Source of the DNA: Rebecca billardiae RCC1528
Lineage: Eukaryota; Protista; Haptophyta
Reading direction: 5' to 3'
Assembly (NCBI GenBank): GCA_965240325.2
Contig: OZ251241.1
Coordinates: 1,426,001 to 1,490,000 of the forward strand
Length of the DNA stretch: 64,000 nucleotides
Shown here: one piece after another, positions 5,582 through 59,958 of the stretch
Position numbering within the stretch: position 1 is the first letter of the stretch
How the letters are laid out: every line of letters begins with the position of its first letter
The notes under the pieces: generated by a model
The model's database searches: none
Told to the model about the DNA's origin: nothing
Seen by the model: only the letters and a program-made list of their open reading frames with translations
Translations under genes and position numbers: made by a program

Positions 5582-8500
5582 TCACTGTCCGACGTCGACG
5601 TCAGCGGGACGGCCGCCCGCCGGACGAGTCGGCCTGGATCCGCCGCCGCCGCCGCGCTTGCCGCGCGCAGAGTAGCTGGCCCACTTCGCCTCGAGCAGCC
5701 GCAGCTGCTCCTCCTGCTCCGCCTGCAGCTGCGCGGCGCCGGCGGGCGAGGCGGAGGAGTCCGCGTGCGCGCCGCCGCTCGACGCATCGGCGGCGGCGGA
5801 CGCGCTCGCCGCCGAGCTGCTGCTGTGGTCGCGCGTGCCGCCGCCGCTGCCCAGGGCCGCCGCCTTGCCGCGGCGGTGCGCGTGGTGCGCCGCAATCAGG
5901 CTGGCCGACTCCGCCTCGGCGGCGCTGCCTTCGCTCACGCGGCCTCCGAACGAGCCCTCGCGCGACCCGCCGCCGCCCGGCAGCGGCCCCAGCTGCTGCT
6001 GCCGCCCCTGCTGCCCCGACAGCCGCATCGCGACGCCCGAGGCGAAGAGCTCGATCTGGGAGCGCGAGGAGCGGTTGCTCGGGAGGTGGTCGCGCGTGGC
6101 GCGCGTGCGCGATACGGCGGGCACCTGGTGCGGCGGCGGCGCGTACCAGTCGTCGCGCGAGCCCCTCAGCCCACTCCCGCGGCCCCCTGCCGCCCCGCCG
6201 CCGCCGCCGCCGCCGCCCCTCCGCCGCTGCTCCATCCAGGACGCGTGCAGCTGCGAGAGCTCCGAGAGAACACCCGTGTCCACCAGCGCCTCGGTGCTCG
6301 GGTCGGGCGCGGAGCGCAGCGCGCGAAGGCGCGGCGGCGAGTAGGGCTCGTCGTCGGAGTCCGAGTCCGCGGGGCCGCCCGTCGTGCCGCCGCGCCGCCC
6401 GCTGCCCCCGCGCCGCGACGGCGGCGGCGCCGCGCCGCCCAGGGCCTCGGGCCCGTCCGTCAGCTCGGCGACGTCCGCGGCTGGCGAGGGCGCGCGCGAG
6501 TGCTGCGCCCGCACTGGCAGCTGCGCCGGCGGCGGCAGCGGCGGCGGCGGGTGCGCGGAGGGCGCCTCGGCGGCGCTGGTGCGCGGGCCGAGCGAGGCGC
6601 GCTTGGCGCGCGCCTCATCCGCAGCGTGCACGGCGCGGCTCGCGATTCGGCTGAGGCTCTTGGGCGGCGGCGCCGGCCGCATCGGCGCGACGGGCGCGCC
6701 GCCGCCCACGGGCGCCGCGCCGCCGCCGCGGGCTGGCAGGCCGCTGGCGCCGTGGGCGGGGCTGGCCATGCTGCTGCCGCGCGAGGGCCACGAGTACCGC
6801 CCCTTGAGCGGCGCGCTCGACGGCGCGCCGCTTGTGCCGCTTGTGCGCTCCGGCGCGCGCTGCTGCGCCAACCGCTCAGAAATCGCCGGCGTGGTGCTGT
6901 GGCTGCGCGCGCGCGGGCCGAGGCCGAGCGCGGCGCCTGCGGCGGCGGTGGACGCGGTCGGGGAGATGGCGTTGCCCTCGCCCGCGCCCACGCCCGCGCC
7001 CACGCCCGCGCCCTTCCGCCCGAGCAGCTCGCGCATCCGGCCGCGCGCGCGCGCCGCCGCGGACGGGCGCACGTAAAACAAGTACTCCTCCAACTGCTCG
7101 ACCAGCCCGCCGAAGAAGTGGGCGGGAAACACGGAGTCACGGAGCGGCAGCACGAGGGCCTGGATGAGCTGCGAGGTGTGCGTGTCGCTCTGCAGCGCCA
7201 TCGCCCACAGCCCGAGCACCGTGTCCACCTGCGCCGTCGTCGGCCGGTGCGCGCGTCGGGCGGGCCGCGCGCGGCGGGGCGCCGGGAGAGCACCGGTGAG
7301 CGAATGGCGGCGGCGGCGCGGCGCGCGGTGGCGCGCGGCGCGCTGCGGAGCCACAGGCGGGCAGGCGGCGGCGGCGGCGGCGGCGACGCACCAGCTTGGG
7401 CTTGTCGTCCTCGTTGGTGAACTCGCCTGCGTCGCAACGAGCGCGCGCGCGCAGGGATGTAGAGAGCGAGCGAGACACGGGGGCACGCACGGGGGGCTCA
7501 GCCGCGCCGCGCCAGGCAGCCGCGCATGCCGCGCGCGCCGCGCTTGCCGCGCCGCGCGCGAGCGCCGCGCCGCCCGCGCCGCGCACCGTCAAAGACGCGA
7601 ATCGAGTCGAGCCACCAGTCGTCGTAGTTGAGCTCGGCGACGGGCTGCAGCTCGCCGCCGCCGTCCTCGCACACGTACATCCGCTCGCCCGCGCCGCCCG
7701 CCAGCGCCGCCCACTGCTCGAGCCGCGTCCAGCCGCGCGTCTGGTAGCTCGCCTTGTCACACTTGGCCCCGTGGTCGCGGTGCGTGGTCGGCGGCGCGAC
7801 CGCGAGGAAGTGGTGGGCTGTGGAGGCGTAGAGATGGAGGGAGCCGATGGAGAGGGCCTTGAGCGCGTCGCACGTCTGCGGCACCGAGACGTAGTCGATC
7901 TGCGCGCCGCGAGGCCACGCGCGCGCCGACGCGCCGAGGTCACGCGCGCGCAGACGCGCGCGGCGGCGCGCGCCGCGCGAGACCGCGCGGTCGAGCGCGC
8001 GAGCGCGCGGCGCGGTGCGGTGCGGTGCGGTGCGGTGCGCGGCGCGGCCGTGCTCACCCAGAGATAGACCGAGTCCGGGTCGATGCCTGCGCGCGTGCAC
8101 AGCGCGTCCACCGCGCGCACGATGCACGGGTAGTGCACGCCCTCCGGGTCCGGCTCGTCGAAGGCCAGCCACTGCGAGCGGCGCGCGCCCGCGGCGGTGG
8201 CGGCGGTGGCGGCGGCGTGTGAGCCCTTGACGGCGCGGCGCGGCGCGGCGCGGCGCGGCGCGGCGCGGCGCGGCGCGGCGCGGCGCGGCCGGCGCGGCGC
8301 GCGCCGGCGGCGGTGGCGGCGTGGGGCCGCGGCGGCGCGCAGCGCGGCGGCGCGCGGCGCGCGGGCTCGCGACGGCGCACCTGGTGCGAGACGAACACGA
8401 GCGTGTGCTCCGCCGCGAACTCGAGCACCTGCCCGTAAGTGTCGCAAACAACCAGCTCCGCCGCGTCGCGCACCGCCTCGTGCGGCAGCAGCTGGCCGTG

Positions 8501-23102: not shown

Positions 23103-26100
23103 ATGTCCACGAGCCTCGTCGAGAAGGAAGTGGTGATCGTCGGCAGCGGTGCCCGTGCGCGCGTGAGCGAGTGCATCAGCGATGACTGGCTCAAGCTCGC
23201 GCCGGGCAGCGAGATTGGCGAGGTCAGGCGCGACGGCGTGCTCGTGCTGCCCATCGCGCCCAGCTCCATGCAGTACTTGACAGCGCACAACATTGACTTC
23301 AACACGCGCGTCGGCGACGGGTTTGTCGACCCCGGCCGGCACGCCTTGAGCGCTGCGCCACTCGTGCCAGAGGATCTCGCCCGCCTCCCCGCTGGCGAGT
23401 TCGGCGAGCGCGAGGTGCTCGTGGTCGACACTCGCATCGACGCGTCCCTGCGCGAGTGCATCGAGCGAGCTCGCTCTGTCGTGCGTCCCATCACAGTCAA
23501 GCGCGATCGCATCAAGGCGCTGGGCGCGCACGTGTCCGGGCTGCTCGGCGGCTTGCCGGATGACGCCGACATCGGCGAGCGCTCCGGCCGCCACATCCGC
23601 GCGCTCATGCAGGCGAGGCGCTCGATGCTCGTGCCGCTCGGCCAGATCTCGCACGGCGTGTGCCGGCACCGCGCGCTGCTCTTCAAAGTGCTGTGCGACG
23701 CGCTCGGCATCGAGTGCGCGCTGGTGCGCGGCGACATCCACGGGGAGACGGGGGCCGGAGGGCCGGCCGGAGGGCACACGTGGAACGTGGTGCACGTCAA
23801 CGGCAGCGCGCTCATCGTCGACGTGATGCTCCGCCCGGGCGAGCTCTACGCGGAGGGCGCGTGCGACCATTACCTCCGCCTCGCCGAGCGGAGCGGCGGC
23901 GGCGGCGGGGCGCAGCATCACGGTGCCGGGCTGAACAGCCTGCCCGCGCCAGCGCCGCGTGAGCCGTGGCACGTGCGACCGGTCGACGTCGAGATCGAGC
24001 GCGGCGCGGACGGCGCCGAGGCGGAGCTCGGCAGCGGCGGGTTTGGGCGCGTGTTCGCGGCGCGGCTGCGAGGCGCGCAGCCGGTCGCGGTGAAGCGACT
24101 AAACGCCGCGGGCGCGAACGCGCGGCTCGAGTTTGAGGGCGAGGTGGAGATGCTGCGCGGGCTGCGCAACGCGCACATCGTGCTCTTCTACGGCGCGTGC
24201 GTCGAGCCGGAGAACCTGATGATTATCACCGAGCGCATGCGCGGCGGCAGCCTTCACGACGCGCTCGCGGGCGCGCCGGCGCGCGTCGCGTGGGCGGCCG
24301 CGGGTGCGCGGATCGCGCTGCACGTGGCGTACGCGCTGCACTACCTGCACACGCTCGAGCCGCCGGTGGTGCACTACGACGTCAAGCCGGCCAACGTGCT
24401 CCTCAACGAGGACTACAGCCTGGCCAAGCTCGCAGATGTGGGGCTGGCGCGCACGATGGCTCACTCCCTCCAGACGGTCCCGGGATGCACGCTTGCATAC
24501 GCCGCGCCCGAGGTGATGGATAGGCGCGCGACCGAGAAGGCGGACGTCTACAGCTTCGGCAGGCTCGTGGACGACCTGCTCACTCGAGCGCAGAGCCCCC
24601 GCCCGCCAGCCGAGCCGCCGGCGGACGTGCTCGAGCTGAAGCTTCGCTGCGTGCAATGGGAGCCGGCCCTTCGGCCCAGTGCGGCTGATCTGGTCTGGGC
24701 GTTGGAACGCCATTGGCTGGACGATGAGCGCGCAGTTGACGCGGCGCCTCCTGTCGAGCAGCCGCCTGCGCCGTCGTGGCCCGAGCCACCGCCCGCAGCG
24801 CCAGGCCGCCCTGCCGCTACCGGGCCCGGGGAGGCGGAGCTGGCCGCGATGAGCTGGCCGGAGCTCTGTGCAGCCCTCTACCTCACAGCCTCCGACCCGG
24901 CCGGGGCCGAGTGCGCGCTGCGCGCGGCTGCGAACCGGACGGGGCCGGGAGAGGATGGAGATGTGGCGAGGCGGGATGCCGCCGACGCGGGCGCGCTCGG
25001 CGCGGTGGTGGCCGCAATGGGCGCGCACGCGGCGAGCGCGGGCGTGCAGTCGCACGCGTGCGCCGCGCTGCGCAACATCTGCACTGGCACGAACGCGCGC
25101 GGGCTCTCGCGCAAGCAGCAGGCTGTGGACGCGGGCGCGCTCGGCGCGGTGGTGCGCGCGATGGATGCGCACACGGCGAGTGCGGCCGTGCAGGAGCAGG
25201 CGTGCACGACCCTGGTCACCATCTGCGCGGGCGCCGATGCGGCTGCCTGTGAGCGCGCGCAGCACGCCGCCGCGGTCGGCGCGCTCGGCGCGGTGGTGCG
25301 GGCGATGCGCGCCCACTCGACGCACGCGGTGCATGAGCAGGCGTGCACGGCCCTCGCGGCGCTGTGCGCTGGCGACAGCGCGGCCAGCCGCGCGCGCACA
25401 CAGGGGGCGGTCGCGCGCGTGCAGCAGGCGGCGGAGCGCGCGCAGCAGGCGGCGGAGGCGGGCGCGCTCGGCGCGGTGGTGGCGGCAATGCGTGCGCACG
25501 TGGCGCGTGCGGGCGTGCAGACGCAGGCGTGCCGTGCGCTGCGCAACATCTGCGCCGGCACCGACGCGGCCGGCCGCTCGCGCGCGCAGCAGGCGGCCGA
25601 GGCGGGCGCGCTCGGCGCGGTGGTGGGCGCGATGGGCGCGCACGCGGCGAGCGCGACCGTGCAGGAGCAGGCGTGCCGCGCGCTGCGCAACCTCTGCCTT
25701 CGCACCGACGAGGCCGGCCCCGCGCGCGCGCAGCACGCGGCCGCGGCGGGCGCGCTCGGCGCGGCGGTTGTTGCGATGCGCAAGCTCAAGGAGAGCACCG
25801 CTGTGCAGGAGCAGGCGTGCCTGGTGCTCGCCACGATCTGCGCGGGCGACGGCGAGGCCGCGCAGCAGGCGGCCGACGCGGGCGCGCTCGGCGCGGCGGT
25901 GAGCGCGATGCGCAAGCACAAGGCCGAAGCGGGCGTGCAGGAGCAGGCGTGCTTCGTGCTCGCCACCCTCTGCGACTTTTACGACGCGGCCGGCCGCGAG
26001 CGCGCGCAGCGGGCGGCCGACTCGGGCGCGCTCGGCGCGGTGGTGGCCGCGATGCGCGCGCACGACAAGAACGCGGGCGTGCAGGAGTACGGGTGCTGGG

Positions 26101-26297
26101 CAATGGACAGCATCTGCGCTGGCACCGACGCGGCCGGCAGCGCGCGCTGGCAGCAGGCAGCAAAGTCGGGTGCGCCCGCAGCGCTCAAGGCTGCGCAGAA
26201 GAAGCACGGCACCTCCCGGCCACAGCTGCAGGAGCGGACAGCCAGTATGCTCACGCAGCTGAGCAACCTGAGCCTCAGCAGCGGCAGTGCGTCGTAG
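23103..26297 (+). CDS. EDR1/CTR1-type N-terminal domain + TKL Ser/Thr kinase + C-terminal armadillo repeats
   Basis: DGFVDPGR, GVCRHRALLFKVLCD and GHTWNVV (EDR1 domain). GSGGFG, VAVK, HYDVKPAN, DVG, APE and DVYSFG (kinase). About 8 repeats of GALGAVVxAMxAH...VQEQAC. Intronless 1064-aa ORF. Confidence 0.88.
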   Translation: MSTSLVEKEVVIVGSGARARVSECISDDWLKLAPGSEIGEVRRDGVLVLPIAPSSMQYLTAHNIDFNTRVGDGFVDPGRHALSAAPLVPEDLARLPAGEFGEREVLVVDTRIDASLRECIERARSVVRPITVKRDRIKALGAHVSGLLGGLPDDADIGERSGRHIRALMQARRSMLVPLGQISHGVCRHRALLFKVLCDALGIECALVRGDIHGETGAGGPAGGHTWNVVHVNGSALIVDVMLRPGELYAEGACDHYLRLAERSGGGGGAQHHGAGLNSLPAPAPREPWHVRPVDVEIERGADGAEAELGSGGFGRVFAARLRGAQPVAVKRLNAAGANARLEFEGEVEMLRGLRNAHIVLFYGACVEPENLMIITERMRGGSLHDALAGAPARVAWAAAGARIALHVAYALHYLHTLEPPVVHYDVKPANVLLNEDYSLAKLADVGLARTMAHSLQTVPGCTLAYAAPEVMDRRATEKADVYSFGRLVDDLLTRAQSPRPPAEPPADVLELKLRCVQWEPALRPSAADLVWALERHWLDDERAVDAAPPVEQPPAPSWPEPPPAAPGRPAATGPGEAELAAMSWPELCAALYLTASDPAGAECALRAAANRTGPGEDGDVARRDAADAGALGAVVAAMGAHAASAGVQSHACAALRNICTGTNARGLSRKQQAVDAGALGAVVRAMDAHTASAAVQEQACTTLVTICAGADAAACERAQHAAAVGALGAVVRAMRAHSTHAVHEQACTALAALCAGDSAASRARTQGAVARVQQAAERAQQAAEAGALGAVVAAMRAHVARAGVQTQACRALRNICAGTDAAGRSRAQQAAEAGALGAVVGAMGAHAASATVQEQACRALRNLCLRTDEAGPARAQHAAAAGALGAAVVAMRKLKESTAVQEQACLVLATICAGDGEAAQQAADAGALGAAVSAMRKHKAEAGVQEQACFVLATLCDFYDAAGRERAQRAADSGALGAVVAAMRAHDKNAGVQEYGCWAMDSICAGTDAAGSARWQQAAKSGAPAALKAAQKKHGTSRPQLQERTASMLTQLSNLSLSSGSAS

Positions 26298-26690
26298 CCG
26301 GTGACGTCGCCGGCCGCGAACGGCACGGTCCGAGCCGCAGGCCCGCAGCAGCCGACCGGCCCGGGCGGGTCAGTCCGACTCAGTACCGCCTGCTAGGGGT
26401 AAGGGGTAACTCCGCGCCGCGCCCCCGCCCGGCGCTGACGCGCAGACGCGGTTACTCGGGTATTACTGGGCACTGGCAACGCGCCTAATGCTACTGCCAC
26501 GACAGTAAAGAAATAATCGATTTTCGGCGTAACCGTAACCCGTCCGCACTTCCGCCCAGTGGGGATGCGCGTAGTTGGAATTTTTTTCATGCCGCGCGTT
26601 CGCGGCACTTCACCGTTCGCGCCGCGCTGTTATTATTATTGCGATATATATATATATAGACGATATAGATATATAGCAGACGATCGTCGA

Positions 26691-26691
<1 letters not shown>

Positions 26692-26778
<87 letters not shown>
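26692..26778. repeat. Long (TA)n microsatellite
   Basis: About 85 nt of uninterrupted TA. Confidence 0.95.
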
Positions 26779-26780
<2 letters not shown>

Positions 26781-26891
26781 TGCGGCGGCGCCGGTCAGTC
26801 ATTAGGGCGGACTGCTGCTGTCAGGCTCGTCTACGTTTCATATCCGAATGCATCGTCAGCAGCAATAGCAGCGCTACCGTGCGTCTGCCGT

Positions 26892-29843
26892 CTACACGGC
26901 AGCGGACCACGAGAAGCCGGCCAGCGCCTGGCGCATCGCAGCGTGCGTCGCGCGGTTGAACTTGTCCGCCGCGTCCGCCTCCGCCTCGTCGAACAGGGCC
27001 TCGAGCAACCCGAAGATGATATGCCTGTCCTCCTCCACGGAGGACATGGAGGCGCGCACGTCGAACGTGGTCAGCGCCGAGACGAACGCGGAGCGGTCGC
27101 GCGCGAGCGCCGCCGCGACCGCGCGGAGCTCGTCGGTGGGCAGCGCCAGCCCGATCGGCAGTTCCTCGAGCGCGGCGATGAGCACCTCGACTGGCGGTCG
27201 GGGCGGCGGTGCGGTGCGGCGCGCACGCGCGGGGCGGGCGCGCGGGCGTGAGCGGTGCGCGCTCGCGAGGTGCACGCGCCCCGCCGCGTGCCCCGCGCGC
27301 CCGCGCGCCCCCACCGCCGCGCGCACAGAGGCACCACGCGCGCGTGAGGCACACGGGCGCCGTCCACGGCTGCAGCACGAGCACGACCCGCCCAGTCGCG
27401 CGCACGACGTCGCCGATGTGCCGAACTTCTTGTCGGGTGGTGCCCTGGCGCATGCAGAGGACGTCGATCCCTGCGCCGCGCGGCGCGAGGCGCGGCGGGG
27501 CGCGGGGCACGCGCGCGCGCCGCGGCGTGAGCCGTGCGCGGGCATGGGGGCGACGGCGGAGGGCGCGAGCTCGGCAGCGCGCGCGCCCCCACGCGCGCGC
27601 ACACACGCCGCGCCGGCGGCCCGCCCACTGGCTCGGGTGGGGTCGGGGCGGCGCGAGGCCGCGCGCGAGCCAGCCGGCGCGCGCGGCGCGAGCTCGCGAA
27701 AGCGCACGCACGGTGCGCGCGGTGACGCACTGCCGCGCCCGCCGCTGCGCGCGAGATGCAATCTCGCCGCGCGCGAGATGCAATCTCGCGGGGAGCGCGC
27801 GCGCGCGCGCACACGGAGGCGCGCGAGATGCAATCTCGCGGGGAAGGCGCGCGCGCGCACGCGCGCACAGAGGTAGGTGTCTGTGGGCTTCAGGTCGTGG
27901 ATGCGCGCGTACAGCTCGATGGCGGAGAGCATCGCGTCGAAGTCGCACGCCTGCGCGTGGCTCACGAACAGGTTCGCGCGCGCCACCGCCGCGGAGCCGT
28001 CCGTCGTGCGCCTGCCCTCCACCATCTCCACCAGTGAACTCGGACCGGCCGCCGGCCCGCCCAGCCCGCGTAATCGGCGCGCGGCCGGGGACGCGCTGAG
28101 CTGCCGGGCGACGAGTCCGATTTGGTAGGAGGCGACGCCGCGCGGGGCGCCGAGCTCGGCCTGCAGCGCGCGCACGTACCCCAGCTGCACGCCCAGCAGC
28201 AGGTGCGGCCGCTCCGCCGCGAGCTCGGCCGCTTCGGGCAGAGCGATGGTGACGGTGGCGGCGGCGGTGGCGCCGGCCGCGGCGGCGCTCGGCCGGCTCT
28301 GCGCGGTTGGATAGATGATGTGTGACCGCGGCCGCTGCTGCGTGAACACGGCTTGCGTGTGCGCGGTCGAGACCAGGCTGTGCGGCGTGCGGCGAGCCTC
28401 CGCCGAGAGCGCACCGCTCGCGACGCAGCGGCACAGCCGGCGCACCGCACGCCACGCAAGCGAGCACAGCCGCGCCGCGGCCGCGAGCAGAGCGCGCGAC
28501 GCCCGCTCGAGGGGCCATGGCGCGAGCTCGCGGCCGAGCGGTGCGAACGTGGTGGCGTGCACGGCGGCGCTGCCGTTGAGCGCGGTGTGGAAGACGCCGA
28601 CCACGACGCAGTTGGCCCACGGCCGCACCATCGCGGCGGGCAGCCCCATCCCCGCAAACAGCGCGATCGCAGACGCTAGGTTGGTGCATCCCATCGCGCG
28701 AGTCAGCCGGCGCGCGACGCCCGGCGGCAGCGACGTGAGCACCTTGCGCGCGCGCCAGTGCGTGTGCAGCGAGAGCGCGAGGACGAGGAGCGGGAGCAGC
28801 ACGGCGCCGGTGCCCACCTGCACGACCTCCAGTGCCTGCGGCGCCGAGAAGAACCAGCACGCGCCCGTCCCGACGTCGAGCGCAGCAATGGCCGCCACGA
28901 ACGCAAGCAGCCGGCGGCGCGCGCGCGGGCTGTGCGCGAGCGTGGGCGAGGCGAAGCGCGCGCCGTCGACGTCGGCGGAGGGCCACGCGGCCTGCGCCCA
29001 GTAGAGCAGGAAGAGGGTGCCCGCGACCACGCCGATCGAGACGTACGCGATGAAGAGGATCAGCCACACCGGGTATGGCACACGCACTGGGCCGTGCAAG
29101 CACCGGATGCCGAGCCGGAGCAGCTGCGCGGCCAGCTCGAGCAGCAGCACCGCCTGCGCGATGCCCGGCGACAGGCGGCCGTCCGCGCGGTAGAAGGCGC
29201 GCAGCCGGTTGACGAGGAGCTCGACGAGCACGGCGTGCTGCACGCCGAGCAGCACGTCGCGCGCGACCCATGCGGGTGAGAAGGGCAAAGCGGCCCACAC
29301 CGTCTCCGAGCGGGCAAAGCGCGCGCGCACGTCCGCGCCCGCGAGGAGCGCGTCCATCAGCGGCTGCGCGCCGCGGTGCGTGATGTCGGCGGCGGGCGGG
29401 TGGGGCAGGCTGCGCGAGTCGCCCGGCCAGAAGTGGTGGTACCGCCATCCCGGCAGCGGGTCGAAGGCCAGGCCGGCCGCGCCGCTATAGAGGAGGTACC
29501 CGACCGCGCCCGCGGCGCCCGCGGCGCGCGCGATCGACTCGAGCGAGCAGTCGCTGAGCGGCGGGCTGTGCTTCACGACGATGGTGCCGTCGAGCGAGCG
29601 CGCGCCCACGTACACGGGCGGGCACAGCCGGTCGTTCCACTCGTCCGACGGCGTGAGCACCACGCGCGCGCGCACGTCAAACGCGGCGGGCGTGAACGCG
29701 AACGGCGCGGCGAGGAGCTCGACGCCGAGAAGGTGCGGCGGGCCGGCCTCGATGACGAGGCGCGCGCTCGCGGGGCGCGCCGCGAGGAGCGTGAGGAGGG
29801 CGACGACGGGCGCCCGTCGCAGCCACGGGCGCCGCTGGCGCAT
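26892..29843 (-). CDS. Receptor-like protein: signal peptide + PA (protease-associated) domain + 7 TM + cytosolic HET/TIR-like domain; two introns (~27868-27471 and ~27326-27192)
   Basis: PA-like segment LDGTIVV...CSLESIARAAGAAGAVGYLLY...ADITHRGAQPL. Seven hydrophobic helices. Spliced FVSHAQAC...YLWIDVLCMRQ...LQPWTAPVCLTRAWCLFEV. Confidence 0.75.
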   Translation of the reverse strand: MRQRRPWLRRAPVVALLTLLAARPASARLVIEAGPPHLLGVELLAAPFAFTPAAFDVRARVVLTPSDEWNDRLCPPVYVGARSLDGTIVVKHSPPLSDCSLESIARAAGAAGAVGYLLYSGAAGLAFDPLPGWRYHHFWPGDSRSLPHPPAADITHRGAQPLMDALLAGADVRARFARSETVWAALPFSPAWVARDVLLGVQHAVLVELLVNRLRAFYRADGRLSPGIAQAVLLLELAAQLLRLGIRCLHGPVRVPYPVWLILFIAYVSIGVVAGTLFLLYWAQAAWPSADVDGARFASPTLAHSPRARRRLLAFVAAIAALDVGTGACWFFSAPQALEVVQVGTGAVLLPLLVLALSLHTHWRARKVLTSLPPGVARRLTRAMGCTNLASAIALFAGMGLPAAMVRPWANCVVVGVFHTALNGSAAVHATTFAPLGRELAPWPLERASRALLAAAARLCSLAWRAVRRLCRCVASGALSAEARRTPHSLVSTAHTQAVFTQQRPRSHIIYPTAQSRPSAAAAGATAAATVTIALPEAAELAAERPHLLLGVQLGYVRALQAELGAPRGVASYQIGLVARQLSASPAARRLRGLGGPAAGPSSLVEMVEGRRTTDGSAAVARANLFVSHAQACDFDAMLSAIELYARIHDLKPTDTYLCARVRARAFPARLHLARLRVRARARSPRDCISRAARLHLARSGGRGSASPRAPCVRFRELAPRAPAGSRAASRRPDPTRASGRAAGAACVRARGGARAAELAPSAVAPMPAHGSRRGARACPAPRRASRRAAQGSTSSACARAPPDKKFGTSATSCARLGGSCSCCSRGRRPCASRARGASVRAAVGARGRAGHAAGRVHLASAHRSRPRARPARARRTAPPPRPPVEVLIAALEELPIGLALPTDELRAVAAALARDRSAFVSALTTFDVRASMSSVEEDRHIIFGLLEALFDEAEADAADKFNRATHAAMRQALAGFSWSAAV

Positions 29844-32433: not shown

Positions 32434-35133
32434 TCATCCTCTGCTTGATGACGAAGGCGGCCAGTTGGCCACGATGCGGCGGCATCGGCCCGCGCTCTGC
32501 TCATCCACGCCGTGGTCGTGCTGCCCGACCGCGGCGCCGCGCGCGTCAGGCCGCGGCGGCGAGCGCGCGGCGGCCGCGGCGGCGGCGGCAGTGCTCGGAA
32601 TGGAATAGGGCTGCCGCTGCTGGGCGCGCTTGCTTCCGCCGCCGACGGCCGGCGCGCCGCTGAGCAGCGGCAGCGGGTTGCTCGGCGGCGGCAGCGCCAC
32701 CCACGCGCCGCCCACGTCCGCGCCACCGCCCCGCGCCGCTTCCGTTGGCCCGCCTGCTCGCAGCGGCGCCCGCGCGGCCGGCGGAGGCGGCGGCGGCGCG
32801 GCGCGCGCGCGCGCCGTGGCGCGCCAGGCGCCGAGCGCGGTGTGGAGCTGCGAGTGCTCGACCGCCATCGCCGCCTCCAGTGGCGGGCTTGCGGGCGGCG
32901 TGTACGGCGGGGGCACGCCGATCGCGCGCGCGGTCGCGGCGCGCGAGCGGCCAGTACCCGTGCTGCCGGCGCGCGGCCCGCGCCCCGCGGTCGGCGGCGC
33001 GCTGCCGCCGGCCGCGCTGGCGCGCGCGCGCTGGTCAGGTGTGCACGCGCCGAGGCCGACGCACCCGGCCGGCACGCCGCCGTCGGCGCACGGCCCCGGC
33101 GCATGCGGCCACCACGGCGGCGCGGGCGCGCACGCGCGGCGCGGCGCGCACGCCGCCGCGCGCGCGTCGCCGTCGTCGCCACCGTCCGCGCCGCCACACG
33201 CCGAGCCTGCGGCCCAGGGCTCGGCGGCGCCCGCGGCGTCAGCGGCGGTGGGCGCGGCGGCACAGGCGGCGGGCGATGCGGCGGCGGCGGCGGCTCGCGG
33301 GTGCACGGCCGCGGCCGGGGCGTCGGCTGGCGCGGCGGCGGCGGCGGCGGCGGCGAGCACGTCGCGGCGCGTGCGCGCGAGCGCCACGCGCGCGGCGACG
33401 ACGCGGCCAAAATGGGCTTGCGCGTGCGCCACTGCCCAGCGCGCGAGCGCGCGCCGAAGGCGCAGCTGGCGAGCGGCCGCGGCCGCGAGCGCGGCGCGCC
33501 GCAGCGCGCGCGCGGCCGCGTCGGGCGGCGGCGCGCGCGCGGCGGCGGCGGCGGCGGAAACGGCCGCGCCCTCGCGCAAGCGGCGCAGCGCCTGCGCAGC
33601 GTACGCGCGACCTCCGACCGCGCGCACCGCGCTGTCGAGCCGCGCGCGCGCGCCGCCGAAGCGCCACGCGCCGACGGCGGCGCGCGCCGCCAGCGCCAGC
33701 CGGCGCTCCGCAGCCGCGTCGGCGGCGGCGTCGGCGTCGGCGCGGCGGCGCAGGTCGGCGGCGTGCGCGCCGAGCGCGCGCAGCACGGCGCGCGCGCGCG
33801 CGCTGCGCCGCCGAGCGCGGTCGACTGCGATGTGGATGGCGCGCGCGTGCGCCGCGACGTCGCGCGCCCACGCGCGCAGCGCGGTGCGCAGCCGCAGCCG
33901 CGCGGCCGCGCGGCCGCGCGCGGCCGCGCGGCGCGCGGCGCGCGCGCGCGCGCCGAGCGCGCCCCAGGCGGCGCCGAGCGCGGCGGTGGCGCGGGCCATG
34001 CGCAGCGCGGCCGCGGCGTGGCGCGCGGCGCGGCGCTCGCGCCGCGCGCGCGCGTGCGCCGACGCCCAGCCGTGCCACGCCGCGCACAGCGCGCACAGCC
34101 AAGCGTGCTCCGCCGCGTAGCGCGCGCGGCCGCGCGCGGCCGGCGCGGCCGCGCCTGCGCCGTGCGCCGCGCCGCCGGCGGCGCCGGCGGCGCCGAGCGC
34201 CGCCAGCGCGCGCCGGAGCGCGGCGCGGCCGCGCGCGGCGGCGGCCCAGCGGCGCGCGAGCGCGGCGGCGGCGCGCGCGCGCAGCTCGGCGCGCAGCCCG
34301 TCGCCCGGCGCCGCGAGCGCCGCGCGCGCCACGCCGCGCGCCGCCCATGCGCGCGCCGCGCGCCGCGCCAAGCGCGCCGCGCGCGCCGCCGCGCCAAGCG
34401 CCGCAAGTGCGCGCAGCGCGCTCGCGCGCGCGGCGCGCGCGGCGTGGGCGCGCGCGGCGCGGAGTGCGCGCGCGCGCGCGGCGCGCGTGCGGAGCCGCGC
34501 CGCGCCGTCGTACCCGCGCGCGCGCCACGCCGCGCGCTCGCGCGACAGCGCCGCCCACGCCGCGCGCCGGCGGCGCGCGGCCGCCGCCGCGTCGGCGGCC
34601 GCGGCCGCGCGGCGCGCGGCCGCGCCGCCGCGCCGCAGCGCGCGCCACGCGCACCACACGGCGCCGAGCGCGGCCGCGGCGGCGCCGAGCGCGTCCGCGG
34701 CGGCGGCGGCGCGCACGTGGCGCAGGGCGCGCATCGCGCGCGCCGCACACCGCCACGCGCGCGCCTCGCGCAGCCGCGCCGCCGCGCGCGCCGCGCGCGC
34801 GCCGCGCGCGCCGCGCCGCGCCCACGCGCGCAGCGCGCCGCGCCGCGCGCCGCGCGCCGCCGCGCGCGCGAGCGCGCCGCGCGCCGCCGCGCGCGCGCGC
34901 AGCGTGGCGAGCGCGAGCGCGCGCGCCGCCGCGGCCGAGGCCTCGCGCGCGGCGCGCACCACGCGCGCCGTCGCCGCCACGCGCGCCAACGCCGCGAACG
35001 CGCCGCCGCCGCGCGCGCGCCACGCGAGCCGCGCGCGCGGCGCGCGCGGCGGCGCGGGCGCGCGCGGCGGCGGCGGCGGCGGCGCGGCGCGCGCCGCGCG
35101 CGCTTCGCGCGGCGGTGGCATCTGCCGCGCAGC

Positions 35134-35164
<31 letters not shown>

Positions 35165-36384
35165 AGCGGGAGTGCGCGGCGCCGCGCAGCGGGCGCGGTG
35201 CGCGGTGCGCGCGGCGGCGTCGGCGGCGAGGTCGCGCGGCGGCGCTCGGCGCGACGCGCGCGGCTCGGCGGCGGCTGCGGCGGCTGCGGCTGCGGCGGCG
35301 CGCGCGGCGCGGCGCGGGGCGCGCGCGCCGCCGGCTTCGTCGGCGGCGCGGCGGGCGCGTCGAGCGCGGCGTCGAGCGCGGCGTACGCCTCGCGCGCGGC
35401 CCTCGACCCGCGCGCGCGCTCGCGCAGCACGCGCAGGCACCGCCGCGCCGCGCCCACGGCCGCGTGCGCGCGCGCGCGCGCGGCCGCGTAGCGCGCGCGC
35501 GCGCGCACGTGCGCCGCTGCGCGCGCCGCCGCCCACACCGCCGTGAGCGCGCGCGCGGCGGCGCGGCGGCGTGTGGCGGCGGCGGCGGCGGGGTGGTGGG
35601 CTGCGGCGTGGCGTGCGCGGCGGCCGAGCGCGTGCGCGCACAGCGCGAGCAGACCGCGCGCGCGCCGCGCCGCGCCCGCCGCCGCGTCGGCGGCGGCGGC
35701 GCGCGCCGCGCGCGCGTCGGCGCGCGCGCCGCGCGCGCGCCACGCGCGCCACGCGCGCGCGCGCGCGCCGCGCGCCGCGGCGGCAGCGTGCGCCGCGCGC
35801 CACGCGGCGTGGGCGTCGTGCCGCGCGGCGCCTGCGCGCACGCGCGACCACGCGCGGCGCAGCCCGACGAGCCGCGCGCGCGCCGCGCCGCGCGCGTCGA
35901 GCGCGGCGGCGGCCGCGCGCGCGGCCGCCGCCGCCGCCCACGCGCGCGCGCGGCGCGCGGCCGCGGCGCGCGCGGCCGCGCGCCGCGCGCCCGCCGCGTC
36001 CGCCGCGCGCTGGGCGGCGGCGCGGAGCGCAGCGAGCGCGGCGGCGCAGCGCGCGCGCGCCTTCCGCGCCCCGCGCGCCCGCGCCTCCGCGCCCGCCTCC
36101 GCCGCCGCATCCGTCGCCAGCCGCCACCCGCCGAGCGCGCGCGCCGCCGCGCCGCGCCGCACGCGCGCCGCGCGCTCGCGCGCGCCGCTGCTGACGAGCC
36201 GGCTGCGAAGTGCAGAGAGCCGAAGGGCTGACAGGGCGAGCTTGGCGGCGAGGCGCGCGCGGAGCTCGCCGAGCATGTGCGCGCGCAGCGCGGACGCCTC
36301 GGAGCCCTCGCCGCCCGGGCCCGCCGCGCCCGCGCCCGCCGCCGCCGCCGCCGCTGCCGCCACAGTCCTGCGTGCCGCGCCGCG

Positions 36385-36453
<69 letters not shown>

Positions 36454-38040
36454 TGGCACTGAGCCCTCGGCCGCGCGCGCCGCGAGCGCGCGCAGCGGCG
36501 CCGTCGGCAGCGCGGCGCACGCCGCGACGACCTCCGCGTGCCGCGCGGCGAGCGCGCGCACCGCGCCCGCGAGCGGCGCGAGCCGAGTGTCCGCCAGCAC
36601 CCGCAATCGGCCGCACGGGCCGAGGCCGCGCGCCGGCCGCCGCGCCGCCGCCGCCGCCGCCGCCGCGGCGGCGCCGGCGCGCGGCGGCGAGGGCGAGGGC
36701 GGCGAGGCGGGGCGTGCGCGTCCGCGCGGCGGCGTGCGCGGCGGCGTGCGAGGGAGCGGCGGGCCGAGGCTCGCGCTGAGCGCGCGCACCGCGCAGTCCA
36801 CCGCGCGCTGCACGCTCCGCGCCGCCGGCGACGAGCGAGCCGCCGCCTCCGCCTCCGCCTCCGCCTCCGCCTCCGCCGCCGCCGCCGCCGCCGCCGCCGC
36901 CTCCGCCGCCGCGCCGCCGCCGCGCGCGCGCCGCGCGCTGCCGCCGCCACCCGCTGCCGCCGCCGTCGGCTCCTCCGCCGCCGACGCCGCCGTCGCGCGC
37001 GCTGGCCACCGGCCGTCCGGCGAGGCGGCAGCGAGTGCCGGGGTGGCGTGGCCCGCGCCGAGCCATGCCGTGGCGGGATCGGGCGGCGGCGGCTGCGGCG
37101 GCGGCGGCGGCCGCCGCGGCGGCGGCGGCGCTGGCGGCGGCGGCGACTGCGGCGGCGGTATGGCTACGGTCGCGGCGGGCGGCGCTGGCGCGTGCACCGG
37201 AGCGCGCGCGCTGGGCGAAGCGGTGCCCGCGGGCGGTGCATGCGAGGGCACGCCGCACGAGGCGCCCGGCCCGCTGCCGTCCGCGCCGCTGCGCGCGCTC
37301 GGCGGCGCGAGCGGCAAAGATGGCGGCGCGCCGGCCGCGGCCGCGCGCACGCGACAGGTGGCCGCGGGCGGTGGCGGCATGGGCGCGCGCTCCAAAGGCG
37401 GCTCGGCGGCCGCCACCTCGGCTGCGCGGGGCACCGAGCCCCCCGTGCCGCCCGCGCGCCCGTGCGCCACCGCGCCGCACGCGCTCGCCGGCCGAGCGAA
37501 GCCAACTGCCGCCGCCGCCGCCGCGGGCGGCGGCGGCGCGGTGCGTGCGCGCTCGCGCGAGTGCGCCGCCGCCTGGCGCGCGATGCTCGCGGCGTAGCCC
37601 GGCATGGGCGGCCTGCGCGCGGGATCGGAAGGCTCGCGCGCGCGCGCGCCCGCCGCCGACGCCGCGCTCGTCACCGCTGGCGGTGGCGGCGCAGCGGTCG
37701 TCGTCGGTGGCGGCGGCGGAGGCGGCGGCGCGCACCGGCGCGCCGCGCCGTCGTGCGCCTCGGCGCCCCCGCCGGCCGCGCCGGCGGCCGCGGCGTACGG
37801 CGGCGCCCACGCGCGCGCGTACTCGCTCTGCGCCGCGCCCGCCGCCCGGCCGCTCGCGCCCGCTAGCGTGAGCGGCGCGGGCAAGGCGGCCAGCAGCGCG
37901 TGAACTTTTCGCGCATGTTCCTCCGCGTCTTGTATTTGCGCGTCCACGAAGGCCGCGCCGCCGGGCGGGCGGAAGGCGGTGGCGGGCGGGGGCACGGGCT
38001 CGCGCGGCGCGCGCCCCGGCTGTCGCCCCGCGTGCAGCAT
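32434..38040 (-). CDS. Large Ala/Arg/Trp helical-repeat protein, Sfi1-like centrin-binding candidate
   Basis: About 1870-aa ORF from ATG 38040, with Pro-rich ends and many periodic A...L.RA...W units (e.g. ARALGGWR, LRTALRAWAR, LRRALARW) resembling Sfi1 repeats. Confidence 0.6.
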
Positions 38041-54790: not shown

Positions 54791-57700
54791 ATGGCCTTCG
54801 CCGCGCTCCTGCCGGCGGCGGCGCTGGGCCGGCTCGCGCTGGCGGCGGGCGGGGTGCTTGACGCGCCGCGCTTCGCCTTCTCCCCCGCCGGCGCGCCGCC
54901 CGTCACCGGACCGCTCGTGCTCACCGAGCGCGCGGACTGGGCGGACGGCGCGTGCCCGCCGCGGCTCGCGACCGCTGCGGACGCAGCGCGGCTGCGCGGC
55001 GCGATCGTCGTGCACGTCGACGCGCCGTTCGTCGCGTGCAGCCCCGAGCAGCACGCCCGCGCCGCCGCGGCGTACGGCGCGTCGGGCTGGCTCCTCTTCG
55101 CCGAGGAGTTCAGCCGGTTCGACGCGACGCCAGGCTTTGCCGCCGGCTTGCACGTGAGCGGCGACACGCGCGCGTTCGGCGGCGGCGTGGTCGCGGCGGA
55201 CATCACGTCGGGCGCGGCGTCGGCGCTGGTGCGGCAGCTCCGCGCCGGCGGCGCGCCGCACGCCACGCTGCACCCCTCCGCCTCCGCCTTCGACGCGCTC
55301 TATGGCAGTTGGCCGGTGCTGCTGCTACTTGCGTTACTCACGCTTGAGGCGGCGCACGCGGCTGAGGTCGCGATCTCGCGGCTGCACGCGTTCCTGCGCG
55401 CGGACGGGCGGCTGCGGCTGACGATCCCGCAGCTCATGCTCGCGCTCGAGCTCTGCGTCGGCCTCTCGCGCCTCGTGCGCATGGGCACCGACCCACTTTT
55501 TCTCTGGCCGGGCCGGCTGGGCGTACACCCGGCGGTTGCGCTCGCGTCGAGCGAGCTCGCGCTCACGTCGGTGTCGACGGTGCTGAGCCTGGTGTACTTC
55601 GTGGAGGCGGCGGACGTGGCGGGCCTCGCCTCGTTCCGCATCACCTCCGCCGCCAACCGCCGCCTCATCCTCGCCGCGCTCGTCGGCACGCCGCTCATCG
55701 ACTCCGCCCTCGCCGGCCTGTTCGCGCGGCACTCGGCAACGCTCGCGGCTTTTGTCGGGCGGACGGTGTTCGCGTTCGGCGTGGTGCCGTGGGGCGTGCT
55801 CGCGTTCGCGGCGCACGCGCACCGCAAGGTGGGCGCGAGCATGCGCCGCGCCTCCGCCCCGCCGCGCGTCGTCGCCCGCCTCAGCGCCGTCACCGTCCGC
55901 CTCCTAGCCATGTCCGCGTTGCTCGCGCTTGTTGCGTCGGGTTGGCCGCCATCGCTGTTCGCACCGTGGCGCCGGCTCGTGGCGCACGCGGCGCTGGTCG
56001 CGGTGTGCACGGCGGCGTCGATGCTCAAGCTGCACCTCTTCCGGCCCGTCGGCGTCGCCATCGTCCCCGGCCCGCTCGAGCGCGCGCACGCGCTCCTCGC
56101 CGCCGCGTGCGCGCGCGCGCTCTCGCGCAGCCGCGGGGCATCGGCTGTCGTCCCGGCGGACGCGGACGGCGAGGACGACGAGAGCGCGCACGCGCGCGAG
56201 CTGGGGCTGGCGGAGGGCGCGGCGCTCGAGCTGCAGCGGCGCGAGCGTTTCTCCTCGCCCGAGCTCGGCCGCACGCGCTTCGAAGCCTTCATCGGCGGCG
56301 GCGGCGGCGACAGCGGCGGCGCAGCAGCTGAGGGTGCAGGCGGAGCGCCATGGCAGTTAGTTCGATCGCGCTCGCTGCAGCCCAGCCCGCCCGGCTCGCC
56401 CGAGGGGTCGGCGTCGCGCGCGCAGCTGTGGCGGCAGCTGCTCTCGCCGGGCGGCGTGCGCAAGCTCGTGCGCACGCCGCCGCCCCAGCCGCCGCCGCCC
56501 GAGCAGCGACGCGCCACCTGGGTCACGCGCCGGCTCGGAAGCACCGGCGGCGCACGGCGCGGCTCGTCGGCGCAAGGGGGTTTCGTCAGCTCGCCGACGC
56601 TGGAGCGGCTGCGCGGCGGCGCGCTGGGTCGGTCTCGGCAGCAGAGCGGCCAGCTGGGCGGCTCGCCGCGCTCGAGGCGCGCAAGCGGCCCGCTCGCCGC
56701 GCGGCGGCTCAGCGGGCCGCTCGCGAGCGCGGCGGCGGCGGTGGCGGCGGCTGCGACGGACGGCGGCGGCAGTGTCGGTGGCACGCCACAGCGCCGGCCG
56801 CGCGGGCGCTCGTCGCTCGGCACCACCACGAGCAGCGGCAGCGGCTTCGGGCTTGTTGGCAACGGCGGCGGCAGTGGCTCGACCAGCCGTGGCAGCGCGA
56901 GCCGCCGGTGCACGCCGCTGCCGCCCGGCCGCTTCGGACCGACGCTCGCCGCCGGGGCGGAGGGCCCCGCGGACCGGCCGCGCCGCGGCGTCTCCGAGGA
57001 TCTCGCGCGCCGAGATCCGATCTCGCCGGCGCGAGATCCGATCTCGCCGGCGCGAGAGGCGATCTCGCCGGCGGCGCGAGCGATGGTCCCGCCGGCGGCG
57101 CGAGCCACGACCTCGGTGGCGGCTGGCCCCGGCTCGCCGCTCGGCGGCTCGGCGGCTCGGGGGACGGCGCTGCACGCGCGCGGCGGCGGTGGCGGCTCGC
57201 CGCTCAACCCGCGCCGCGCGGGCAACTCGCCGCTCAACCCGCGCCTCTTCCGCGCGGCGAGCGCCACGGCAGAAGGCGGCGGCGGCGGCAGCATGGCCGC
57301 CGCGGCGGCGTGCGAGGGCGCGCCGCCCCGCGGCCCGGCGCCCGACGAAGGCGGCGGCGGCGGCGGCGGCGGCGATCGGCTCGCAGGTGTGGAGATGCTG
57401 AGACGGCACGCGTCGGCCGGGCAGGCGGGCGCGGCTCCGCGCCCGGCCGCAGCGGCGCGCGTGCCCGCGTGCGCGCTCACTCGCCCCTCGCTCAGCGGCG
57501 GGCACGTTCCCTCGGCCGTGCTGCTCGCTCGCGCGGAGGTGGCGTCGGCGGAGCCGGGCGCGGCGGCGGAGCCGACACCGCCGCTGTGTGCAGGCTCGCC
57601 AGCGGCGGCGGGCGCGGCGGCGCGCCGCGTTCCGCGCGCGGGCCCCGCACGGCACAGCGGCGAAAGTGCCGGAAGTGCCGGCAGCGCCGCTCGCCACACG

Positions 57701-59131
57701 CGCGGCAGCGGCAGCCCGGGCGGCGCGTGCCTCGCGCGGCCGGGCGGCGGCTGCGCGACGCGCGGCGCGCCGCGGCTGAGCACGAGCTCGCTCTCAAGCT
57801 ACGGCGAGAGCTACGGCAGCGCTGGCTCCATGAGTACTAGCGGAGCAAGCGGCGGCTCTCTCGGCGCCGCCGGCTCGGGCGCGAGGTCCGGCGGCGCGTC
57901 GCGGCACGGCGCGGCTGCGGGCGGCGGTGGCGGCGGCGGCTCGGGTCGCGACTCGGCGCTGACGGTGCCGGGCGCCGAGCGCGCGCCGCGCCGGAGCCAC
58001 GTGGGCGGGCTGCCCGAGCACCTCACGCTCGGAGTCTCCCTAGCGTACCTCCGCGAGTTTTCGGCGGAGCACGGGCTTGGCGCCGGTGACCCGACTTATC
58101 GTGTGGGCGAGATCGTGAGCGCGCGCACGCGCGAGTCGGGGCTGTCGATGTGCGAGCTGCTGCGCGCCTCGGCGCTGTGCACCGCGGACGGCCGGCCGGC
58201 GGTGCGCGCCGCGGGGCTCTTCGTAAGCCACGCACAGGCGTGCTCCTTCCTAGGCCTTCTTGACGCGCTCGCGCAACACATGGAGCTGCACACACTGCCG
58301 CCCGAGCGCACTTACGTCTGGATAGAGTGCGCGCCAGCAGCGCGCCGCCGCGCACCGCACCGCGCCGCCGCCGCGCGCGCACCGCACCGTGGCGTGCCGC
58401 ACCGCACCGTGCCGCACCGCACCGCACCGCACCGCACCGCCGCGGGACGCGCCGCGAGCCCGACGCGCGTGCGCCCAGCACCGACCGCGCCCCCAAATAC
58501 CCAGCCCTAACCCAAACCCCAACCCTCAACCCCAACCCTCAACCCGCCCCCGTACGCGCGGCACGCACGGCGCTCCCCACGCGAACCTCGCCCCCTGTCG
58601 CCCGAACCCGACCCCTCCGCCTGACGACGACACACACCAGTGTCTTCTGCATCCGACAGCACCGCGTCGATTTTGACGTGCTGCACATTGGAGCGATCGT
58701 GCGTCACGTGGCACGCACGGTCGCGATCCTGGAGCCGTGGGACCGGCCGGCGTGTCTGACGCGCGTGTGGTGCCTGTTCGAGATCATGCACGCGCACCTG
58801 GCGCACGCGGAGGGCGGCGCGGCGGCGGGGCAGCCGCAGGCGCAGGGCGGCGCGCTCGCGGCGGCGGACCGCGGCGGGCGCGGCTCAGACGAGCGCAGCC
58901 TGCGCGCCTCGACCGAGCGAAGCGGCCGCACGTCGGAGGAGCACTGCTCGGGGCGCGCCGCCGCCTCCGAGCCGCACACCCGCGCGACCGAGCTCGCACG
59001 CAGCCCGTCGGCCAGCGGCGGCGCAGAGGCCGGGCTCCTCGCCGACGTGGAGGGCGGCGGCGGCGGCGCGTGCGCGGTCGGTTCGAGCTTCCGCACGCTG
59101 CGCGTGAGCGCGAGCTACGCAGACTTCGGCA

Positions 59132-59163
<32 letters not shown>

Positions 59164-59958
59164 CAGCCATCGCCGCCGCGCGGCGCGGCGCGCGGCGCGG
59201 CGGCGAGCTTCTCACTCGCCCTCTCGAGCGCGCAGCGCGAGGCGTTCCTGCGCGCGCTCGACTCCGACCGCGAGACGGTCGTGCGCACGCTCACATCTTT
59301 TGACGCGCGGCACGCGGAGGCGTCCCTCGACGACGACCGCACGCGCATCCTCGAGCTCATCATCTCGCGGTTTGCGCCGAGCGGGCTGAGCGCGGCGCAG
59401 CTGCGCGCGCGCGGCGCCGAGCGCGAGCCCGCCGACGCCGACGCCGCGCTCGACGCCTTCAACTCGACGGTGCAGGCGGCGATCCAGGCGGCGGTCGCGG
59501 GCATGTCGTGGGGCAACCTCGTGTCGTGCGGCGCGGCGGCCGAGCGCGGCGGCGCGGCGTCGTCGTCGCCGGACGCCGGGCGGCACGGGCGCTCCTTCCG
59601 CTTCGGCGCGCTGGGCTGCCGACTCTTCCAGACCTCCTCCGCCTCGCGCCTCGACGACAGCGGCAGCGCCGCGGCGCGGCGGCGCGAGCGCAGCGGCGGC
59701 TCCGCGCGCGAGCGCAAGCGCAGCGTGGCGTGCGACGCGCCGCTCCCGATCGGCCGCAGCGCGAGCGCGTTCGTGCCCGCGCTCCGCCGCAGCCTCTCGG
59801 TGCGGAGGCCGAGCGTCGCGTCCGCCGCCGGCCCGATCAACGCCGCCGGCAGGCTCGCCGCGGCGGTGCGGCACGGCAGCCAGCGGGAGGCCGAGGCGGC
59901 GCGGCGGCGCACCGCGCCACCCGAGAGCGGCGGCGCGGAGCGGCACACGCGGAGCTCA

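Follow-up and report, generated by a model that had tools for sequence, protein, structure and literature searches.

TIR-type domains are common to the innate immunity of bacteria, plants and animals, and proteins with the fold of G-protein-coupled receptors (GPCRs) form the largest class of eukaryotic sensors. In protists, seven-transmembrane (7TM) receptors are also found joined to a cytosolic effector of their own, as in the oomycete 'GPCR-bigrams' (e.g. GPCR-PIPK) and in Dictyostelium RpkA, and the known partners in GPCR fusions are lipid kinases, cyclases, kinases and phosphodiesterases. In a second group of proteins, a single chain combines a sensor outside the cell, an anchor in the membrane and a TIR-type output in the cytosol, as seen in animal Toll-like receptors (TLRs) and in virus-responsive membrane TIR proteins of Gephyrocapsa huxleyi (PMC12489294). 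Here, we analyzed a gene of the haptophyte Rebecca billardiae RCC1528, termed gene A, whose predicted product resembles both groups. It lies at 26892..29843 on the minus strand of a 64,000-nucleotide stretch of contig OZ251241.1 (assembly GCA_965240325.2, positions 1,426,001 to 1,490,000), which is called the window below; all coordinates are those of the window, and all features of gene A are on its minus strand.

The product of gene A is very probably a type-I-oriented seven-pass receptor, in which our models place a signal peptide, a protease-associated (PA) ectodomain seated directly on a 7TM bundle of the GPCR fold, a basic helix, a disordered linker and a cytosolic TIR/HET-like module in a single chain. 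As in the GPCR-effector fusions, a 7TM bundle is thus covalently joined to its own cytosolic effector-type domain. In contrast to the receptor-TIR proteins, which carry a single helix with leucine-rich-repeat (LRR) or epidermal-growth-factor (EGF) domains, gene A has as its membrane part a full 7TM bundle of the GPCR fold with a PA domain on top, and its output is a larger (~260 aa), HET-related module that fails the Pfam thresholds for both TIR and HET. Receptor-TIR proteins and GPCR-effector fusions are both already known, and for a haptophyte, TIR proteins with several transmembrane segments have received a general mention (PMC12489294). In literature searches, we found neither a TIR/HET-type partner of a GPCR-effector fusion nor a description of a PA-7TM(GPCR-fold)-TIR/HET protein, and we found no curated family covering the 7TM part or the module of gene A. 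As far as these searches show, a fusion of the GPCR fold with a TIR-type domain is apparently undescribed.

Gene model of gene A

The G+C content of the window is 72.6%, with long stop-free frames listed on both strands, and a 983-codon open reading frame (ORF) at 26892-29843 (-) is open throughout because of this composition. An earlier reading of the DNA, made from the letters and an ORF list (the sequence-only reading), had reported this ORF correctly, but it had taken the ORF as a single uninterrupted coding frame and so had read through two GT-AG introns. Based on the ORF list, the splice model and the alignment of homologues across the junctions, gene A is predicted to run from start to stop codon in three coding exons and two introns, with a spliced coding sequence of 2418 nt and a product of 805 aa, not 983. 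Coding exon 1 (27869..29843) encodes aa 1-658 and the first base of the Trp659 codon. It is followed by intron 1 (27471..27868; 398 nt, GT..AG, phase 1), which is made of G+C-rich repeats and which, when read through in the raw ORF, gives the Arg/Ala-rich middle of the 983-codon translation. Coding exon 2 (27327..27470) lies in a frame different from that of the raw ORF and encodes aa 659-707, including the W-I-D-x-x-C-x-R-Q block, strand C and W-C-L. Intron 2 (27191..27326; 136 nt, GT..AG, phase 1) separates it from coding exon 3 (26892..27190), which encodes aa 707-805, the helical C-terminal half of the module, and ends with the stop codon at 26892-26894. The FDVRAS...FNR stretch pointed out in the sequence-only reading corresponds to aa 749-786 and lies in exon 3.

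We inferred the splicing of gene A from homology. The spliced C-terminus aligned with a homologue, P0013, without gaps at either junction (38% identity over 276 columns, E 3e-55), and the source of P0013 is a 2.3-kb JGI contig which is filled nearly completely by the ORF and looks like a transcript. Moreover, a profile of the family C-terminal module matched exons 1, 2 and 3 at the consecutive positions 7-121, 116-162 (independent E-value (i-E) 3.6e-18 for exon 2) and 165-261, and the splice model is also backed by a paralogue in the same window (paralogue B, described below). One low-depth contig from a run termed X1 joins position 27867 to position 27206 via 23 foreign letters; this join does not agree with the predicted splice sites, nor with a cleanly skipped exon, and it may come from the paralogue of a relative.

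In DNA of 72.6% G+C, where long spurious ORFs occur on both strands of the window, gene A could be a chance open frame in stop-poor sequence, or a pseudogene, and no RNA evidence for the gene was found. We strongly disfavor this reading, to which we give very little weight: gene A has homologues at E-values of 1e-46 to 1e-10 across 430-460 aa, paralogue B is conserved, the predicted structure models of both halves are confident, two canonical introns exactly restore the frame, and the residues conserved in the family are retained in gene A.

Signal peptide and PA ectodomain

The N-terminus of the product (aa 1-27; 29763..29843) resembles a signal peptide, with a hydrophobic core and A-S-A before R28. 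Hydropathy analysis placed a hydrophobic signal-like segment at aa 12-33, in agreement with the signal peptide proposed in the sequence-only reading. In the AlphaFold model, a helix at residues 11-20 had a low predicted local distance difference test (pLDDT) score and the ordered domain began at residue 28. The signal peptide would presumably be cleaved from the product.

Residues 28-177 (29313..29762) are predicted to adopt the PA fold, a beta-sandwich flanked by helices, as suggested by Pfam, the family alignment, the model and Foldseek. C74-P-P, G86, C99-S, G132, G141-D and G169 are near-invariant in this ectodomain. The gathering score of Pfam PA (PF02225) is 23.9 bits, and gene A scored below it, at 14-15.4 bits (E 0.02-0.057), while paralogue B reached 17.4 bits (E 0.005). 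Pfam PA was detected at E<=1 in 14 of the 45 family members, with a best E-value of 3.4e-7, and one member, P0019, passed the cut-off with 26.5 bits. In a Foldseek search with residues 28-177, the matches were the PA domains of the aminopeptidase 2ek8, ZNRF3/RNF43 and VSR1, with template-modelling scores (TM-scores) by target of 0.5-0.65; the ectodomain also matched EDEM3, RNF43 and VSR1 in the AlphaFold DB, together with clusters of PA-bearing peptidases. The PA-like ectodomain of the sequence-only reading is thus borne out at the level of the fold, the Pfam match being weak in gene A itself and above the cut-off in P0019.

A PA ectodomain that follows a signal peptide and adjoins the membrane is likewise present in VSR1, RNF43/ZNRF3, the RMR-type PA-TM-RING ligases and SPPL2. 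However, the membrane part of these PA-domain proteins is a single pass or a nine-transmembrane presenilin fold, whereas that of gene A is a 7TM bundle of the GPCR fold. The SPPL2-type combination of PA with an intramembrane aspartyl protease was considered as a candidate and rejected: gene A has seven and not nine transmembrane helices, SPPL proteins matched in architecture only, with a TM-score of 0.2 and a root-mean-square deviation (rmsd) of ~19, and the YD, GxGD and PAL motifs are all absent from the protein.

A seven-helix bundle with the GPCR fold

Using a family alignment of 45 sequences, we predicted the structure of aa 1-475 with AlphaFold. The PA domain and the 7TM bundle were modelled together with a mean pLDDT of 89.6 and a predicted TM-score (pTM) of 0.87. 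The model shows exactly seven transmembrane helices (190-221, 228-248, 257-286, 306-333, 336-369, 374-399 and 408-432), which confirms the odd number proposed before. The bundle as a whole (aa 190-432; 28548..29276), defined from the model, structure searches and the family alignment, carries the conserved residues E208 in TM1, L233, E236 and R243 in TM2, P351 in TM5 and P408 in TM7, and TM7 is followed in the model by a long cytosolic helix of basic character (aa 444-474; 28422..28514). About 20 or more Lys/Arg residues are on the predicted cytosolic side compared with ~5 outside, as expected from the positive-inside rule; given the signal peptide and this clustering, the N-terminus is predicted to be outside and the C-terminus inside.

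Re-alignment of the Foldseek PDB matches with VIA-align gave Z-scores up to 19.2 (MrgD, GPR3, GPR34, SMO and FZD7), with an rmsd of 3.5-4.0 over ~240 residues. In a Foldseek-independent search of 48,161 PDB representative chains, the top 50 were all of the GPCR fold and spanned classes A, C, F and T, as well as LYCHOS/GPR155 and a designed GPCR-like fold; their Z-scores of 15.7-18.5 are above the level of ~13 that, according to the search tool, is common for unrelated helical bundles. Among Swiss-Prot models, the best whole-bundle match was plant TOM1 (TM-score by hit 0.66-0.69); PRRT3, taste receptors and MRGPRs came next. The nearest clusters in language-model features were THH1/TOM1/TOM3, GPR137_N, PRRT3 and TPRA1, with scores of 0.81-0.87 overall, and of 0.85-0.87 for the group of THH1/TOM1/TOM3, GPR137 and PRRT3, that serve as leads only. 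None of these best-matching families (THH1/TOM1/TOM3 (PF06454), GPR137, PRRT3 and TPRA1) is known to carry a PA ectodomain or a TIR-like tail. At the sequence level, no Pfam 7TM or GPCR family was matched at E<=1 in the 45 family members, and no match to PF06454, PF27607 or PF25987 was found among them by Pfam. With regard to the class A motifs (DRY, NPxxY and CWxP), DRY and NPxxY are not among the conserved columns of the family. Taken together, the models assign the bundle to the GPCR fold, with orphan 7TM proteins of the TOM1/GPR137/PRRT3 type as its closest relatives. The GPCR-like receptor of the sequence-only reading therefore holds for the fold, but without class A motifs or a match to a Pfam GPCR family, and the label 'GPCR-like fold' is justified while 'GPCR' is not.

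Gene A might still encode a conventional GPCR, which signals via heterotrimeric G proteins and for which the module is a regulator or scaffold only. The bundle does match many G-protein-bound structures at Z ~18-19, and one family member, KAG8460825.1, bears the UniRef name 'RGS domain-containing'. However, a shared fold does not show coupling, the RGS label was not reproduced by Pfam at E up to 10, and neither a Pfam GPCR family nor conserved DRY and NPxxY columns were found, which makes this reading very unlikely.

Orphan 7TM proteins of the TOM1/GPR137/PRRT3 type are mostly endomembrane proteins. Another alternative is that gene A encodes such a protein of the vacuole, lysosome or Golgi. 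Its PA domain would then face the lumen and bind cargo or other proteins there, in the manner of vacuolar sorting receptors or SPPL2-type proteins, and the product would not be a ligand-gated receptor of the cell surface. This would be in line with TOM1 and then PRRT3 as the best whole-bundle matches, with the nearest feature clusters, and with the PA domains of VSR1 and EDEM3 among the fold matches. We consider it unlikely, as an endomembrane location leaves the conserved fusion to a TIR/HET-like output unexplained; moreover, even the feature scores of 0.87 are leads only, PF06454 was detected in none of the 45 members, and the SPPL2-type protease identity is excluded by the helix number, the TM-score and the absent motifs.

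A TIR/HET-like cytosolic module

The basic helix is followed by a low-complexity linker (aa 475-545; 28209..28421), which is unconserved in the family according to the splice model and the alignments, and by the cytosolic module (aa 546-805; 26895..28208), which is split by both introns and was delimited from profiles, the model of P0013 and structure searches. The module consists of an N-terminal helical part (L-L-L-G-V...), an alpha/beta core starting from L-F-V-S-H-A-Q (aa 625) and a helical extension. As the gene A copy is intron-split, residues 480-764 of P0013 were modelled with the family alignment in its place, which gave a pLDDT of 89.8, and P0013 was also used for Pfam.

The whole module (~280 aa) matched the N-terminal parts of protist proteins described as TPR-like, 'Mbre TPR', kinesin-light-chain-like and NPHP3-like, at E-values of 1e-13 to 1e-8, and TM-scores by query were 0.6-0.79 for the matches to TPR-like/NPHP3-like proteins. 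Oomycetes, green algae and haptophytes are among the taxa recorded for the clusters matched. In proteins whose names refer to Apple, EGF-like or ephrin-receptor-like domains, the match was to the C-terminal part. These results show that it is a portable unit, which stands at the N-terminus of TPR/STAND (NLR-like) proteins or at the C-terminus of receptor-like proteins with other ectodomains.

When the alpha/beta core (residues 98-285 of the P0013 model) was compared with PDB chains, the top 28 by Z-score were all TIR domains, including SARM1, RPPT, RPP1, RUN1, MyD88, AbTir and SPARTA (107-134 residues, rmsd 3.1-4.5), at Z 5.2-6.7, where the tool cautions that Z < 8 is a zone of common arrangements. 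ThsB and nucleoside deoxyribosyltransferases ranked below these 28 chains. The TIR match of the module in Foldseek had a probability of 0.77 and an E-value of 0.1, and the best viral structural match was a TIR/WD40 protein of Tetraselmis virus 1.

The gathering score of Pfam HET (PF06985) is 22.5 bits. HET was detected at E<=1 in 5 of the 33 module sequences, all below the threshold, with a best E-value of 0.0076; for whole proteins, P0009 scored 15.2 bits and P0013 13.7 bits, and in P0013, the one inspected, the match covers the W-I-D-x-x-C-I-x-Q block. Pfam searches with the single module exons of gene A gave no matches. HET has been described as remotely homologous to TIR up to helix C, with homologues in Haptophyceae, stramenopiles, choanoflagellates and green algae (PMC4986451; PMC10197012). 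Fungal HET and the protist HET homologues share with the gene A family a block pattern of a hydrophobic strand, W-I-D-x-x-C-I-x-Q and R-x-W-x-L-x-E. In the gene A family, however, the module is C-terminal to a membrane receptor, whereas HET is N-terminal to an NLR-like ATPase/repeat protein. Taken together, the models suggest that the core of the module has a TIR-like fold and is related to HET below curated thresholds. The HET/TIR-like domain claimed by the sequence-only reading thus stands on its TIR-fold matches, but by sequence it yielded sub-threshold HET matches and no TIR match.

We then focused on Glu708, a candidate catalytic glutamate whose codon (27186..27188) is the first complete codon of exon 3, as judged from its position, conservation and the model. 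It ends the W-C-L-F-E sequence within the family motif R-x-W-C-L-[FY]-E, which the model places in the helix after strand C, and the position is E in at least 16 of the 21 family members with a full core. In plant TIRs, the catalytic glutamate belongs to the motif S-x-W-C-L-x-E-L and lies where helix C starts, and the catalytic glutamate of SARM1 is E642. Glu708 is a putative counterpart of the catalytic glutamate of plant TIRs.

The module could instead be a non-enzymatic adaptor at the end of the same architecture, which once the receptor is activated recruits the many soluble TPR/STAND proteins with this module by homotypic contacts, in the way that TLR TIR domains recruit MyD88. Many protists have TPR/NPHP3-like proteins with this module at the N-terminus, and no sequence match of the module to enzymatic TIRs was found; moreover, the analogy with TIR has led to the proposal that HET is an adaptor (PMC4986451). 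Against this stand the family-wide conservation of the glutamate that follows strand C and the enzymatic TIRs SARM1, RUN1, RPP1, AbTir and ThsB among the best structural matches. Most non-animal TIRs are enzymes. On balance, we find the adaptor reading somewhat unlikely.

Family, paralogue and distribution

An exhaustive phmmer search with aa 1-475 of gene A against 1.84 billion cluster representatives retrieved 57 proteins at E<=1e-3, 50 of them at or below 1e-10. None of these representatives is closer than ~43% identity, and most are 750-850 aa long. The module was detected in 32 representatives, all of at least 579 aa and including every member of at least 640 aa, while the other 25 are of at most 603 aa and mostly fragment-like. 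In word-indexed protein searches, one returned no match, one returned four stand-alone or short module proteins and one returned only a single protein, P0056; these near-blank results were probably due to Ala/Arg-rich words that swamped the candidates.

Only three family members carry an organism name, and all three are from Diacronema lutheri, whose genome has a G+C content of 73.25% (PMC8379373), matching the 72.6% of the window, as fits an origin from a pavlovophyte haptophyte or a near relative. One family member, P0021, is KAG8460825.1 (D. lutheri, 1069 aa), the protein with the RGS name in UniRef. No RGS domain was found in it by Pfam even at E up to 10, including searches with its inter-domain and tail pieces.

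Paralogue B (54791-59514, plus strand) has the same architecture of PA, 7TM and module as gene A, with 33% identity over PA and 7TM and 36-46% over the module exons. Its linker of ~645 aa is of low complexity and rich in G, A, S, R and P. Within W-I-D, the first module intron interrupts the Asp codon in paralogue B (phase 2) and the Trp codon in gene A (phase 1), so that the two positions are two codons apart.

PA and 7TM without the module were found in other protists, namely in P0056 (EukProt PLAT2197, 564 aa, a complete ORF) and in atlas clusters labelled Endomyxa. It follows that the PA-7TM unit predates its fusion to the module or is the more widely distributed of the two, and the PA-7TM-module family of haptophytes looks like a lineage-specific fusion.

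A homologue on a giant-virus-like contig

One full-length member with PA, 7TM and the TIR/HET-like module, P0055 (640 aa; L004:10001-11923), is encoded on a 131-kb ENA contig. It matched the PA+7TM profile with 143 bits, and its module keeps F-V-S-Q-A-Q, W-I-D-I-F-C-I-D-Q and W-C-L-F-E. The genes on this contig are densely packed, most without a Pfam match, and the neighbors of P0055 include a single-ORF Rpb1 (1558 aa), ClpP, a RING protein and a helicase. The nearest taxon-labelled clusters to the Rpb1 are viral (Nucleocytoviricota). A scan of IMG/VR with P0055 gave no match. We conclude that the contig probably belongs to a giant virus carrying a host-type receptor, and the homologue points to a host-virus conflict around this receptor.

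Proposed mechanism

In the explanation that we prefer, the PA domain of gene A would bind a ligand outside the cell or in the lumen, and by analogy with the PA domains of VSR1 and RNF43/ZNRF3 this ligand would most plausibly be a peptide, the end of a protein or a glycoprotein. Binding would alter the conformation of the 7TM bundle or cause its clustering, and this change would bring the TIR/HET-like modules together. The modules may then act through Glu708, by cleavage of nicotinamide adenine dinucleotide (NAD+) or production of a nucleotide signal like enzymatic TIRs; alternatively, they may recruit proteins bearing the same module. No G protein would be required for this signaling, and the most likely setting would be biotic sensing or defence, for instance against viruses. 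The sequence-only reading had likewise proposed a receptor that senses peptides or proteins and can signal without a G protein; this function is hypothetical, whereas the domains and the helix number of that reading were borne out. Early in virus infection of G. huxleyi, TIR genes with extracellular or multi-transmembrane N-termini are induced, and the catalytic Glu is retained in them (PMC12489294).

We hold this explanation as a whole, i.e., the architecture together with a ligand-driven enzymatic output of the TIR/HET-like module, tentatively, its chances being slightly short of even. The enzymatic-output mechanism of the module, which is proposed by analogy with known TIRs, we regard as possible but rather doubtful.

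Several observations weigh against the explanation. The nearest 7TM relatives are orphan and often endomembrane proteins, so that location at the cell surface and gating by a ligand are assumptions. The structural Z-scores to TIR domains all fall below 8, in the range of common arrangements, and TIR was not matched by sequence in Pfam (E<=1), PADLOC or NCBIfam, while a profile search of PDB sequences gave chance matches only. Glu708 is a putative equivalent of the TIR catalytic Glu, placed by sequence and model. HET was originally proposed as an adaptor, not an enzyme (PMC4986451). Finally, three DNA-like runs sharing words with gene A yielded scraps only, of ~90% likeness and without splice joints.

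A wider scenario would be that pavlovophyte haptophytes have a receptor class not recognised before, in which a PA-ectodomain sensor of the GPCR fold directly drives a TIR/HET enzyme which cleaves NAD+ or makes a signal, as a '7TM Toll-like receptor' that answers biotic or viral cues and does without G proteins, and that a giant virus captured a full-length copy as a decoy or for hijacking. We regard this scenario as speculative and on the whole unlikely. If gene A does encode a conserved 7TM sensor with its own TIR/HET-like output, it would offer a simple and genetically tractable case of G-protein-independent 7TM signaling, and the 'sensor plus TIR' logic known from TLRs and NLRs would then reach a third kind of sensor. 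There would also be a link to the membrane TIR proteins that respond to virus infection in haptophytes (PMC12489294). Moreover, the HET-like module of protists is abundant and uncharacterised, and the module of gene A is a compact, well-modelled example that bears on whether HET-type domains are enzymes.

Neighboring features in the window

At 7561-8123 (-), we observed the exons of another receptor gene with the motifs Y-L-W-V, I-D-Y-V-S-V-P-Q and Y-Q-T-R-G-W-T-R-L-E-Q. This HET-like motif set is unlike that of gene A, and the exons matched the gene A module profile weakly (i-E 0.12) and had no Pfam match. The window therefore has at least three receptor genes with HET/TIR-type tails.

The gene convergent with gene A (23103-26297, plus strand) encodes an EDR1/CTR1-type peptidase-like domain (Pfam E-value 1e-26), a protein kinase (3e-35) and armadillo repeats (2e-16). 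Most of the gap between the two genes is occupied by a long (TA)n microsatellite (26686-26786) in surroundings of 70%+ G+C. The G+C content becomes extreme further along the window, reaching 91% at 34001-36000 and 86% at 36001-38000.

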